Assembly: GCA_965240325.2 (NCBI GenBank)
Contig: OZ251223.1
Location: 3,844,001 to 3,908,000, forward strand
Direction: 5' to 3'
Origin: Rebecca billardiae RCC1528
Lineage: Eukaryota > Protista > Haptophyta
Length of the DNA: 64,000 nucleotides
Part shown: piece by piece, positions 38,685 through 60,135 of the stretch
Position numbering within the stretch: position 1 is the stretch's first letter
Layout: the number at the start of each line of letters is the position of its first letter
Notes under the pieces: model-generated
Told to the model about the DNA's origin: nothing
Databases searched by the model: none
What the model saw: only the letters and a program-made list of their open reading frames with translations
Made by a program: the position numbers and the translations under genes

Positions 38685-38856
38685 ATGACCGCGTTCCGCG
38701 GTCCTTCCGTAGAACCAACGTAGTAAGGGGCGCGCGGTGCACCCTTCGTCGGCTGCTGTCTGCTTACTACTTATTTATAGCAGTCTGTCTGTCTGACATG
38801 GTCACTGATGATCGGTGTGAACACTGTGAACAGTTCGTATGACGCCTCGCGGAGCT
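38685..38856 (-). mobile_element. Family B (Helentron-like 3' end), copy 2
   Basis: 38685-38760 is the reverse complement of 50790-50865 with 4 substitutions. 38761-38856 continues the match but is broken by insertions. Confidence 0.8.
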
Positions 38857-38949
38857 CGAATGTGCGCGCGGGTCACTCTGCTGTATCTCCGTCTTGCGGC
38901 CGAAGTGGTTCTGTCACTTCTGCGCGCTCAGCTCCGCCGGGTAGCTGAC

Positions 38950-39210
38950 CGATCGAGTCGACTTGCTCAAACGTTCGAGCGCAGCTTCGGCAGCGCGCTG
39001 CTGCTCGCGCGCTCACGGCGCTGCCTCGAGCGCATCCATCATGGCATTCATGGCCAGTCCAGCCTTCATCTCCGCCTCCAAGCTCGGCCCACCTGCCTGC
39101 TCACGCGCACCTCGGACGGGTTGGCCTGCGCTGCGTCGGTGGCCGCTGGGTCAGGGTGCCGCTCGATGACGATGGCGACCGTGTTGCCCAACTGCTCGAC
39201 GTTGACGAGC
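38950..39210 (-). pseudogene. Isolated coding-like fragment
   Basis: LVNVEQLGNTVAIVIERHPDP... and ...SLEAEMKAGLAMNAMMDALEAA in different frames, no start context, next to the family B copy. Confidence 0.35.
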
Positions 39211-39371
39211 TTATTATTCTGCTGCTTATTGGAGCGGTACCGAGTCACCAGGATCCGGAGCCGGAGGACGGCTGTCCGTCTGACGCGATGACTCAGACTG
39301 TCTTGTCTGCTGCTGTCTCATCATCACGTACTCTCGCGGACGCACAGACTAGCAGACTGGCTAGCTAACTA

Positions 39372-39955
39372 TAGATAGATAGATAGATCTCTAGATAGAT
39401 CTCTAGATAGACTCTAGATAGATCTCTAGATAGATCTCGTCTAGATAGATAGATAGATCTCTAGATAGATCTCTAGATAGATCTCTAGATAGATAGATAG
39501 ATCTCTAGATAGATAGATAGATAGATAGATCTAGATAGATAGATAGATAGATAGATAGATAGATAGATAGATAGATAGATAGATAGATAGATAGATAGAT
39601 AGATAGATAGATAGATAGATAGATAGATAGATAGATAGATAGATAGATAGATAGATAGATAGATAGATAGATAGATAGATAGATAGATAGATAGATAGAT
39701 AGATAGATAGATAGATAGATAGATAGATAGATAGATAGATAGATAGATAGATAGATAGATAGATAGATAGATAGATAGATAGATAGATAGATAGATAGAT
39801 AGATAGATAGATAGATAGATAGATAGATAGATAGATAGATAGATAGATAGATAGATAGATAGATAGATAGATAGATAGATAGATAGATAGATAGATAGAT
39901 AGATAGATAGATAGATAGATAGATAGATAGATAGATAGATAGATAGATAGATAGA
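39372..39955. repeat. Long (TAGA)n array with a degenerate (TAGATAGATCTC)n left segment
   Basis: About 106 pure TAGA units at 39532-39955; variant 12-mers at 39372-39531. Confidence 0.98.
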
Positions 39956-40159
39956 AACTATAGCAGACGACGACCGGACTAAGCCAGTAAGTTCAAGCTC
40001 CCAGGTATAGACATAATAAGCAATCGCGACTGCTAGTAGTATCCTGGAGAGTGTTATGATTCAGATCGATCGACGAAGGCTATCCTGCTGATTATACTAG
40101 CTACTAGTACTACTGCTGAGAGTGACAGCTCGGCTGAGACGATACGGCATCAGGGTTAA

Positions 40160-40249
40160 CTCTCTCTCTCTCTCTCTCTCTCTCTCTCTCTCTCTCTCTC
40201 TCTCTCTCTCTCTCTCTCTCTCTCTCTCTCTCTCTCTCTCTCTCTCTCT
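40160..40249. repeat. (CT)n microsatellite
   Basis: About 45 units. Confidence 0.97.
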
Positions 40250-56724: not shown

Positions 56725-57007
56725 CGAGATGGGCTCTATCTCGTAATCATAATCGCATGTTTTTCGCGCGGGCCTTCACGATCACTCAGATTGATCGGCG
56801 GGACGTCGTGGAGGGCTGGCTTATTGGCAGGTCGTCCCGCCGCACCCGCGGGGGCCGCACCCGCGGGCGTCGGCGGCGGAGGCTCCGGCTTCGGTCCACC
56901 CCCCTAAGCTCCATAGCATCTTGGCCCCTGGCCGAAGCCATCCAAGCGGACCATGCAGTGCAGTCCTATTCGACCCCCGATTGATGGATTCGAGAAGCTT
57001 TTGGGCA

Positions 57008-59901
57008 CACAGTGAATAACACGCCCCAGCCAAGGGTGGTCAGGGTCGCCGACTCCAGCGGAGTCCGGCGCCGGAGCTTCGCTTACAGATTTTTGCAGCG
57101 GAGCGGCGCGCGCGGCCGCCGCCGCTGCGGCGGGCCGCTCGGGACGTGCACGGCGTGGGCTCGTGCGGCCGCTGCCGCGCACGCCGAGCGATCTGGCGCG
57201 GTGTCGCGGCTGGTTGATGGCCTCGCGCGCCCCAGCGCGCCGCGCGCCTTGCCTGACTTCGCCTGTCTCGCGCCTTGGCCGCCGTGCACTCATGCGCCGC
57301 CAAACCGCAAGCTCGGCATACCTCTCAGCCGAGCGAGCACGTGCCTTGCGCGACGCGACGCGGGCATTGCCGCCGGGCGATGTAGGCGTAGTGTGAGCGC
57401 GCGCCGTGAAGCCTCGGCGCGGATCGAGAGTGTCTTCAACGTCTCGGTCAGCTGTCGACAACTGCTGACGCATCAACCACCAATGGACATCACCACGGTC
57501 CTCCGTTGAACGATGGGATATCGCGACGCTGCGACTCGTGAACTCTAGTCGAGCGTTGTAGCCAAAACGACGAAGGCCACTATGACGTGTGTGTGAGCCT
57601 TGCGTGACGATGCGACGTGACGATCGCCCCGGCAAGAGAGTCAGTCGTGCAGCTTTCTGCACAGTGCTCAACGAACAGACGGTCCACGCGCGTACGCGGC
57701 ATCATTTCATTGTTCTCGATCCGCGCCGAGGCTTCACGGCGCGCGCTCACACTACGCCTACATCGCCCGGCGGCAATGCCCGCGTCGCGTCGCGCAAGGC
57801 ACGTGCACGCTCGGCTGAGAGGTATGCCGAGCTTGCGGTTTGGCGGCGCATGAGTGCACGGCGGCCAAGGCGCGAGACAGGCGAAGTCAGGCAAGGCGCG
57901 CGGCGCGCTGGGGCGCGCGAGGCCATCAACCAGCCGCGACACCGCGCCAGATCGCTCGGCGTGCGCGGCAGCGGCCGCACGAGCCCACGCCGTGCACGTC
58001 CCGAGCGGCCCGCCGCAGCGGCGGCGGCCGCGCGCGCCGCTCCGCTGCAAAAATCTGTAAGCGAAGCTCCGGCGCCGGACTCCGCTGGAGTCGGCGACCC
58101 TGACCACCCTTGCCCCAGCGGCGAAGCGGACAAACAAAATGGCGGACGCCCGCCTCGCGGGTCGCTCGCGTGAGGCTCGATGGCCGAGCCCACGGAGGGC
58201 CTGCGGCGACTGGGACATGTCAGCGGACAGCTAGACACGCATAGCGCCCTGTCAGAAGCGTCAGAGAGCTCTCATGCCAGCGCAGCTGCTCGCCCTGCCC
58301 GTCCTCGAGCTCGGCGCCGAACGGCACCGAGACTGGCTGATCGAGCCGTCAACACCGCGTGTGCGCGCGCGGATCGCTGGAGGAAGCGAAGACAGGGTCC
58401 AGCTCGGTAGGTGAGGTGTGGAGAGTATATGCCATGTCAGAGTCACCGCGACTCGAATGAGCCTCGAATCGCCCGTGCCGCCTCCTCGCGCGCTGCTCGA
58501 GCACGATGCGTTTGCTGCCGCAGCTGCACCCTGCGCACTCCCGCGGAAAGACATCGCGCGCGCTTGCCCACGAAGCTGAAGCAGGCCGGCAGCTGCTCGC
58601 GGAAGAGGACCGCACACGAGCTGCCAAGCTGGCGCCCAGCTGCCGCGACCGCGGCACGTCAGCTCGACGAGCCAGCGCACTGCCGCGACCACATCGTCTC
58701 CTTTGAGCTGCAAGCTGATGAGCAGTGATCTGCGCGACGGCGCGCGAAGCGCGTGGGCAGTGGGTCGACGCAGAGAGGGTGACGTGAGCGATGTGAATCG
58801 TGGAATGCGAGGCCTTCGCACTCGCGCGGCACCCCAAAGCGCACCCGACTGGGCATGGTTGTGCCTCGCTGAGTTGCTCGCATTCGTCATCCGATACGGA
58901 TGCACACTGCTGTGATGTGCGCCCGAACGAGACGCTACCATCGGCGGAACCGCGACCTCGGCACGTCGTCGAGTGCGCAAGTGCGCAACGAGGTCGTGAA
59001 TGTAGTCAAGCTCGCTCAGGTCGCCCTGAGTCAGCGCAAACGAGCTGTTCTGCGCGCGTGCGCAGACGGGGCCGCGCAGACGGCATCATTGCATGAGCAC
59101 AAAACTGGGTGGGAATCATGCAGCCCTAGCGTGGGAAGCAGAGGCGCTGGCGGTCGGGGAGGCGGGCGCTCGAACGCACGCCCGACGTGTGCAGGCACAC
59201 GCACCGTCAGCCATGGTCGGCACCATTCGCCTGGTGTACTGGCCGTCGGTGTCCAGAGCTCTGGCAGCAGTCCATCACCTGCGTCCGATCCATAAACATC
59301 GTAGACGTGAAGGCATGGACCGCCAGGTCGGACAAGAAGCACGCACTCGATGGACATCTGGACACCAGTCGCGTCACAAACAACGCTCAAGTCCGCCTTG
59401 ATTGCTTGAGGATGTGACCCGACGGGCATGCGCTCGATGTGCCGCTCGAGCCCACAAAAGTGCAGCACTTTTGAGGTGGAGGATATTGGGGGCGAGACAT
59501 TTCCAGCGGTCCAAAAGGAGCATGCGAGCAAGTACTTGCACCCAACCAACCACTCAGACAGCCACCCAGGCCCGCCATCCATCGGGACGGGTGGGAGCAA
59601 GCATCACATGTCGGTCGCGTGCTGCTGCGAGCTCGAACACGCCTGCTTCGGACGCGGGCTCTTCTCGTGGCAGAGTCGTGGCGCGACACCCGAGCTAGTG
59701 TCCCATGTAATGGCCAGCTATACGGTCCGCCCAGTACGGGATGGGCCCACGGATGATCGCGCCCGTGGGCCCGGCTAGAGCGGCCGAGTGACGGCGGAAG
59801 GCCTCGGGCGGACGACTGAGATCCCGCCATCGCCCTGCCAAATCGGCCGGTTCCCAAGCAGTTTTGTTTGTCCGCTCCGCCGCTGGGGCGTGTTCACTGT
59901 G
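57008..59901. mobile_element. Outer DNA transposon with 40-bp CACAGTG-starting TIRs (CMC/Transib-like termini), non-autonomous
   Basis: Right TIR 59862-59901 reverse complement is CACAGTGAACACGCCCCAGCGGCGGAGCGGACAAACAAAA. Left TIR is 57008-57030 plus 58120-58139, split by an insertion, with 1 mismatch and a 3-nt insertion. CA flanks both ends. Confidence 0.8.
57031..58112. mobile_element. 1082-bp foldback element (399-bp TIRs, 284-bp spacer, 7-bp TSD CCCCAGC); P/Galileo-like
   Basis: Arms 57031-57429 and 57714-58112 are inverted copies with one mismatch noticed (57336/57807). Termini CAAGGG...CCCTTG. CCCCAGC at 57024-57030 and 58113-58119. Confidence 0.92.
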
Positions 59902-59959
59902 CATATCCGACCACCTGCTCCCAATAACAGTTCAGACTAACCTATATTCTCAGCATCAA

Positions 59960-60030
59960 TGATATACAGATATATATATATATATCTGTATATATATACA
60001 GATATATATATGTGTGTGTGTGTGTGTGTG
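59960..60030. repeat. (TA)n/(TG)n microsatellite
   Basis: Seen directly. Confidence 0.9.
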
Positions 60031-60034
60031 TAAT

Positions 60035-60135
60035 ATGGCCGCGTTCCGCGGTCCTCTTCCGCCGTCAGAACCAACGTAGTTGGGGGGCCGCGGTGCAGCT
60101 GTGCCACCCGCTCCGTCACGGCACACTGCAGCCTC
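60035..60135 (-). mobile_element. Family B (Helentron-like 3' end), copy 3, insertion-riddled
   Basis: atggccgcgttccgcggtcct[ct]tccg[ccg]t[c]agaaccaacgtagtt...ccgcggtgc aligns to the reverse complement of 50790-50865. Confidence 0.75.

Follow-up and report, generated by a model that had tools for sequence, protein, structure and literature searches.

The question raised by a 64,000-nt stretch of the genome of the haptophyte Rebecca billardiae RCC1528 (assembly GCA_965240325.2, contig OZ251223.1, positions 3,844,001 to 3,908,000; hereafter the window, whose own coordinates are used throughout) is what process has riddled some copies of its repeats, here called families A and B, with short insertions. 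An earlier note on this DNA had proposed that repeat copies decay here by insertions rather than substitutions, either through end joining by polymerase theta (Pol-theta) or slippage, or through a genome defense comparable to repeat-induced point mutation (RIP). In this study, we realigned the repeat copies and analyzed the short duplications of the window, to which all statistics below refer. Our results make it probable that most of the inserts are footprints built up through repeated excision of cut-and-paste DNA transposons of the hairpin-cutting hAT type, a mechanism that is already known and whose scale here is unusual.

Family B is represented in the window by three copies of one element end. 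The terminal core of copy 1 (38685–38761, + strand) aligned with that of copy 2 (50790–50866, − strand) over 77 nt with four substitutions and no indel, essentially as the earlier note had described. The adjoining tail of copy 1 (38762–38856, + strand), which starts about 105 nt 3′ of the stop codon at 38655, is 95 nt long versus 38 nt in copy 2 (50752–50789), and this growth is accounted for by 5–7 insertion blocks, with no deletion and 1–3 substitutions, the ranges here and below reflecting varied gap penalties. The alignment score of the tail, 25.5, was higher than that of all 10,000 GC-matched non-homologous windows used as null, from which true copies were excluded (maximum 20.9), and the stretching by inserts that had been reported for this tail was thereby confirmed. 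Copy 2 as a whole (50752–50866, − strand) is a short clean end that forms the terminus of a putative Helentron-like element (48871–50866), whose two ends, related yet unequal, lie in AT-rich flanks and whose cargo is GC-rich and gene-like. Copy 3 (60035–60122, + strand) differs by 4–6 inserts, one deletion and 4–6 substitutions, these inserts being perfect duplications of 2 and of 3 nt, a single-nucleotide insert and a spacer-containing duplication of 10 nt. Its alignment is marginal past 60097 (296 of 10,000 null windows), and the case made for this copy, with about seven inserts, is weaker than had been claimed. The clean 77-nt core is most simply read as a functional end that would have been preserved while the element lineage was still mobile. 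No exact match to the family B end was found among metagenome contigs.

The picture in family A is similar. The 3-nt insertion that had been noted there is present, and the wider copy (18660–18815, − strand) proved far more riddled than had been claimed, its 18660–18814 portion measuring 155 nt versus 94 nt at 22776–22869, with 10–13 insertion blocks and 0–1 deletion; none of 10,000 null windows scored as high as this extension. The short copy (22774–22869, + strand) has TA followed by a CAGTTT end, which we take to be Tc1/mariner-like, and a third copy of 46 nt (14094–14139, + strand) shows substitutions only. Together, the 14094 and 22774 copies polarize the first inserts of the copy at 18.8 kb. 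Neither the inserts in the first 46 nt of that copy nor those of family B copy 3 occur in either of the two other copies of their family, which indicates gain rather than loss. Families A and B were the only decayed pairs found by an insertion-tolerant scan of the window. Pooling all repeat pairs gave 19–26 insertion blocks, 1–2 deletions and 14–24 substitutions, with only two pairs (the family B core, and family A 14096 versus 22776) differing by substitutions alone. Insertions are far above deletions and about equal to substitutions, a tally that supports an insertion-generating process strongly biased over deletion, as had been suggested, but not the dearth of substitutions implied by the wording of that suggestion.

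The fidelity of the assembly was assessed with independent Logan contigs. Exact matches to proteins of the window are present in contigs of runs ERR14847148, ERR14847150 and ERR14847151. Three contigs of ERR14847148 and ERR14847151 (L001 over 6832 nt, the other two, L005 and L011, over 3015 and 2292 nt) have zero differences to the window, and a fourth (L013), compared over 8463 nt, has one substitution and takes in the strongest field of the signature described below (23295–25200). The check for long-read consensus error was thus passed by about 20 kb of DNA, that field included. It did not extend to the three riddled copies, which no recovered contig overlaps (L001 stops at 38712, within the family B core), so that for their particular inserts the assembly is the only source. 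Heterozygosity is patchy, with four substitutions and one indel in the 1.2 kb at 12921–14119 (L002–L004) and none in the 6.8 kb at 31881–38712 (L001).

The proposed route to such gains would begin with an element that inserts and duplicates a target of about 7 bp (6–9 bp). Its excision would drop the base beside each end, and each flank would close as a hairpin centered on the complement of that base; after hairpin opening and end joining by host enzymes, two target copies would remain, separated by complemented bases, for a net gain of 6–9 nt. For a target T1..Tn, the simplest product would be T1..Tn-1, complement of Tn, complement of T1, T2..Tn, and elements with 2–3-bp target duplications would likewise yield a 2–3-nt class (XY becoming X Y′ X′ Y). 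Repeated cycles behind genes would nest footprints within footprints and swell the repeat ends located there, to which ordinary slippage would contribute some perfect 2–4-nt duplications. Observed directly are the bias toward insertion, the junction pattern, the peak at 7 bp, the symmetry of the targets, the position of the scars and one allelic event. The chemistry of these steps is taken from the literature, and we infer the presence of real elements at each scar, their family and the reason why 3′ spacers are affected.

Duplications of this form are strongly over-represented in the window. The main test set was 15.6 kb of spacer bounded by gene borders, in which we counted duplications with cores of at least 5 nt and took the expectation from trinucleotide-preserving shuffles. 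Both junction bases were complemented in 35 duplications versus 3.8 expected, one side in 34 versus 13, and neither in 23 versus 12.3. The implied targets were of 6 bp (29 observed, 12.2 expected), 7 bp (25, 2.6), 8 bp (5, 0.8) and 9 bp (3, 0.3), whereas perfect 7-bp duplications were not enriched (3 versus 1.5). Shorter duplication classes were also compared with shuffles, since the 7-bp mode might stem from the length cut-off. The excess of fully complemented duplications persisted when the hottest field was removed (20 versus 3.2), in contig-confirmed DNA (9 versus 1.1) and with 4-mer shuffles, and the test was repeated on low-GC segments. Counts were 1 versus 2.3 expected in transposon interiors and 15 versus 9.2 in coding DNA.

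The junction bases and implied targets carry further features of excision. In 26 duplications, one junction base stands between identical flanking bases; it is complementary to them in 19 and a transition in 6, a bias expected if two one-base overhangs can pair. Double junction bases are complemented in 17 of 44. The allelic substitutions seen were transitions only, the opposite of the junction bases, and this rules out perfect duplication followed by later substitution as their main origin. Among the 30 implied targets of 7–8 bp, 25 have a pyrimidine at position 2 and 23 a purine at the mirror position, so that 48 of 60 positions fit the symmetry nYnnnRn (p 1.6e-6, background 0.50). Two other known junction types were rejected as the main cause: even (RAG-type) junctions were not in excess (1 versus 0.8 with 5-nt cores, 3 versus 4.3 with 4-nt cores), and the TA-CAG-TA and TA-CA-TA forms of Tc1/mariner footprints were few. 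A few 3-nt inserts could fit an even RAG-type junction.

A single step of the process appears to have been captured between alleles. Behind a stop codon at 13089–13106 (+ strand), the window reads A GCATGCA ct GCATGCA G, while two contigs (L003 and L004) have one copy of the core and are 9 nt shorter; this 9-nt allelic indel has exactly the predicted footprint form. The same form occurs within the riddled repeats. An insert in the tail of family B copy 1 (38815–38833, + strand) reads G TGTGAACA c TGTGAACA G, its junction base complementing both flanks. Another (38782–38796, + strand; A GTCTG tct GTCTG A) is ambiguous, since two 4-nt slippage steps would account for it as well as a 7-bp footprint containing three palindromic bases would, and the 10-nt duplication of copy 3 fits only partially. 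In the riddled family A copy, some inserts of 2 nt (C-TG-A, A-CT-G) follow the pattern X Y′ X′ Y, the footprint expected of a 2-bp target. Inserts of 1–3 nt are only partly explained.

The signature was also evident in the overall composition of the spacers, where the eight trinucleotide classes of the type X-N-complement(X) are enriched above all others and inverted repeats peak at a one-base center. We summarized it as the lag-2 ratio, the observed over expected number of complement pairs two bases apart. Convergent spacers gave 1.40 and tandem spacers 1.25, compared with 1.04 for divergent promoters and 0.89 for introns. The ratio climbs from 1.18 to 1.44 across the first 300 nt behind stop codons, compared with 1.05–1.13 before start codons, and is 0.92 inside the Helentron-like element and 0.94 inside a CAC-ended element. 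The process is one that tracks position, not repetitiveness. Introns (e.g., 14812–14970 and 38019–38159) are GC-rich and signature-free even though they are expected to be near-neutral, which suggests that access depends on chromatin.

The strongest field lies between two convergent gene ends at 22010–25200, with a ratio of 1.5. Others are found between convergent genes at 1290–1770 (about 1.5), behind an eIF2B-epsilon-like gene at 17727–19400 (1.44–1.48), between convergent NOSIP-like and WD40 genes at 28180–28570 (1.5; confirmed by L013, with no transposon visible) and around microsatellites at 39200–40700 (1.38–1.46). Within the last field lie a (TAGA)n tract of about 590 nt (39370–39955) and a (CT)n tract (40160–40250), and footprint fields contain several tracts of (TA)n, (GT)n and (TACA)n as well. 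An AT-richer stretch of 1.2 kb at 19400–20580, upstream of an AP2 gene, does not have the spacer signature and is probably a younger insertion. A protein search with the AP2 product did not retrieve the alga's own protein.

Comparison with characterized transposons supports assignment to the hAT type. Footprints of Ac/Ds retain the target duplication, with palindromic bases centered on the complement of the element-adjacent base (PMC5873905). The scars in the window are like those of Ac/Ds in maize, Arabidopsis, budding yeast and Candida albicans in their kept duplication, their complement-centered palindrome and the single shared junction base where overhangs pair (PMC5873905). They are unlike them in that their peak is at 7 bp rather than 8 and they form fields across most spacers behind genes rather than marking single donor sites. 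Enzymes of hAT, MULE and Transib elements all form flank hairpins, whose opening and joining are attributed to host enzymes (PMC5499845). The hAT element Hermes has the target preference nTnnnnAn (PMC6900584, PMC10512250), and the targets implied here likewise favor Y at position 2 and R at its mirror, although C/G is as frequent as T/A and most targets are 7 bp long. The same chemistry is used by the MULE Muta1, whose 8–9-bp duplications could explain the few 9-bp scars, including the allelic one, but unlike here, its excision in yeast is more than 90% precise and leaves few footprints (PMC5499845). As in excision mutagenesis in grasses (PMC5023962) and the repeated gain and loss of Stowaway at one site (PMC1925063), excision scars would have shaped near-gene DNA over evolutionary time; the scars in those studies are scattered and varied, with deletions or substitutions, whereas in the window net insertion prevails and entire spacers are shifted in their word composition.

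Two structures in the window are candidates for elements that make such scars. A young foldback element without an open reading frame (ORF) at 57024–58119, whose arms (57031–57429 and 57714–58112) are bounded by a perfect target duplication of 7 bp (CCCCAGC, in agreement with nYnnnRn), is a candidate member of the footprint-making family. It is nested in the left arm of a CACAGTG-ended element (57008–59901; 57006–59903 with its 2-bp flanking duplication CA), which is a candidate source of the 2-nt footprint class and differs in duplication length from Transib elements, which have 5 bp. The 3-nt surplus reported for the left arm of the CACAGTG-ended element is real, but its direction is not derivable from two arms.

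Several observations weigh against the reading of the inserts as hAT-type footprints. It is likely from three features of the sequence that the scars belong to this type, but no cognate element was found, no hAT transposase lies within the window, and nowhere were a filled allele and a footprint allele seen at one site; at 13089–13106, only empty and footprint alleles were present among the contigs, and the core of that event is itself palindromic, which makes it a weaker test. The foldback may be P/Galileo-like instead, as its CAAGG end is presumably compatible with both hAT and P/Galileo, and P/Galileo elements are not known to excise through flank hairpins. Among the inserts of the riddled copies, several are perfect duplications or resist parsing, for example, blocks of 19 and 24 nt that look nested and have no unique parse. 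In the spacers, duplications with non-complementary spacer bases (23 versus 12.3) and perfect ones of at least 6 nt (28 versus 6.6) are in excess as well. The number of insertion–excision cycles required is very large, and the base for all of these counts is one window. Finally, in simulations, which serve as a plausibility check only, 7-bp footprints alone gave a lag-2 ratio of 1.08–1.17, below the observed 1.5, while 2-bp footprints reached up to 1.42; many 2-nt events would therefore be needed, and the model is at its least certain about where these come from.

Some of these observations are what would be expected if slippage, repair of nearby opposite-strand nicks and Pol-theta end joining were the main source of the inserts and footprints a minor overlay, an explanation we regard as unlikely. 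Perfect duplications are enriched at lengths of 3 (period 3, 156 versus 104), 6 and 8 nt, and short perfect ones, of 2 and 3 nt, occur in copy 3. End joining at staggered breaks is an established origin of tandem duplications and, like templated insertion by Pol-theta, resembles the present case in its short duplications and net insertion (PMC5730883), and insertions are six times as frequent as deletions in fission yeast (PMC6330053). However, these processes predict no complemented junction, fixed length or target symmetry. Ordinary mutagenesis would produce mostly perfect duplications and a lag-2 ratio below 1, and simulated slippage indeed gave a ratio of 0.94–0.95 with 5–6 perfect 7-mers per kb, whereas the real fields have a ratio of 1.51, zero perfect 7-mers and 2.8 footprints per kb. 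In the spacers, 25 complemented 7-bp junctions stand against 3 perfect ones. Pol-theta templated inserts should in addition be accompanied by microhomology deletions, which is at odds with the scarcity of deletions in the pooled tally, and the introns are signal-free. The suggestion in the earlier note of Pol-theta or slippage as main cause is consequently not sustained, although slippage remains a minor contributor, as in the perfect 2–3-nt duplications of copy 3.

Possibly, the scars were made without any element integrating, by a hairpin-forming nuclease, such as a domesticated or donor-free hAT-like transposase, that makes staggered cuts in the spacer chromatin behind genes. The very high density of scars, the field at 28180–28570 with no visible element and the confinement of the signal to 3′ spacers (1.40 in convergent versus 1.04 in divergent spacers) would all be in keeping with such an enzyme. 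In the known chemistry, however, integration makes the duplication and excision the complemented base, so that an element is required for the two to occur together; the window does contain mobile elements whose duplications match in length, and there is no direct evidence for the enzyme. We consider this explanation distinctly improbable. If it were true, a chromatin-guided nuclease derived from hAT would be a standing insertional mutator that sets the length and composition of spacers, in place of replication error or transposon traffic.

A homology-triggered defense that inactivates repeats by insertion, as suggested earlier for transposable-element DNA, is largely refuted and very unlikely. 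RIP in fungi is triggered by homology, strikes both copies and causes C-to-T substitutions. Damaged repeat copies are what the window has in common with it, some being heavily riddled, but neither a homology trigger nor damage to both copies nor C-to-T changes were seen: partner copies are clean, the best-matched 77 nt of copy 1 are free of inserts, and the signature is not restricted to repeats, being missing from transposon interiors and strongest in unique 3′ spacers. That the signature follows position counts against such a defense in itself. It is equally improbable that the short copies are the derived, deleted state; the tail of copy 1 and the arms of terminal inverted repeats (TIRs) are comparisons of two copies without an outgroup, but the inserts of copy 3 and of the first 46 nt of family A are unshared with both other copies, and deletion cannot produce complemented junction bases. 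That the inserts are consensus errors or over-fitted alignments is hardly credible, since, although the riddled copies lie outside the recovered contigs and two cases (the copy 3 tail and the TIR at 54057) are weak, about 20 kb of independent contigs agree, with one substitution in the long ones and the strongest field included, the 399-nt foldback arms are 99.7% alike, and none of 10,000 null windows matched either of the two main alignments.

Relatives of R. billardiae were compared for the signature. In a homologue search, the kinase encoded at 34393–35499 had 73% identity with a Diacronema lutheri protein and 71% with a protein of Pavlovales sp. CCMP2436, which places the window in a further member of the Pavlovales. 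In L012, a 5-kb contig from a different Pavlovales run, the spacers have a ratio of 1.24 and, over 1.1 kb, four footprints versus 0.2 expected, at this single locus; the signature sits in the spacers at L012:1–405 and 1701–2292. CCMP2436 has a weak excess of footprints (5 versus 1.6) and D. lutheri, near the same gene, has none (4 versus 4.0, ratio 0.95), each again at a single locus. Since the signature is shared by another Pavlovales data set but missing near that gene in D. lutheri, the lineage lends itself to a natural comparison.

Excision footprints are known at single donor sites, and Schwarz-Sommer and Saedler reportedly regarded them in the 1980s as a general source of sequence diversity. 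To our knowledge, footprints are rare and varied in most genomes, which has made that idea hard to test. In the window, their density appears sufficient to turn the customary bias toward deletions into its opposite and to alter the word composition of whole spacers, and the target length and preference of departed elements can be read from the scars. A literature search, whose coverage left out most subscription journals, found no description of a genome with spacers this saturated with scars. If the pattern is genome-wide, it would be a measurable record of past cut-and-paste traffic, and dating of repeats by substitutions, as well as their alignment, would fail in such genomes.

Other features of the window are more loosely connected to the inserts. 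A further element, ended by TAGGGGGTCCAT (TAGGG-ended), occupies 51679–54068 and has no clean target duplication. The 12-nt surplus reported for its right arm, the TIR at 54057, was based on a 6-nt match that is not above chance (911 of 3000). An ORF inside this element (51932–53251) had no Pfam hit and no homologue in the protein search, and the long ORF at 47443–48342 likewise had no Pfam hit. Beside the right arm of the TAGGG-ended element, 10 nt at 54048–54057 (GGCTGCTGTC) are in common with the family B core, probably by chance. A perfect palindrome of 26 nt lies 3′ of family B copy 3 at 61546–61571 and possibly belongs to the other end of that element.

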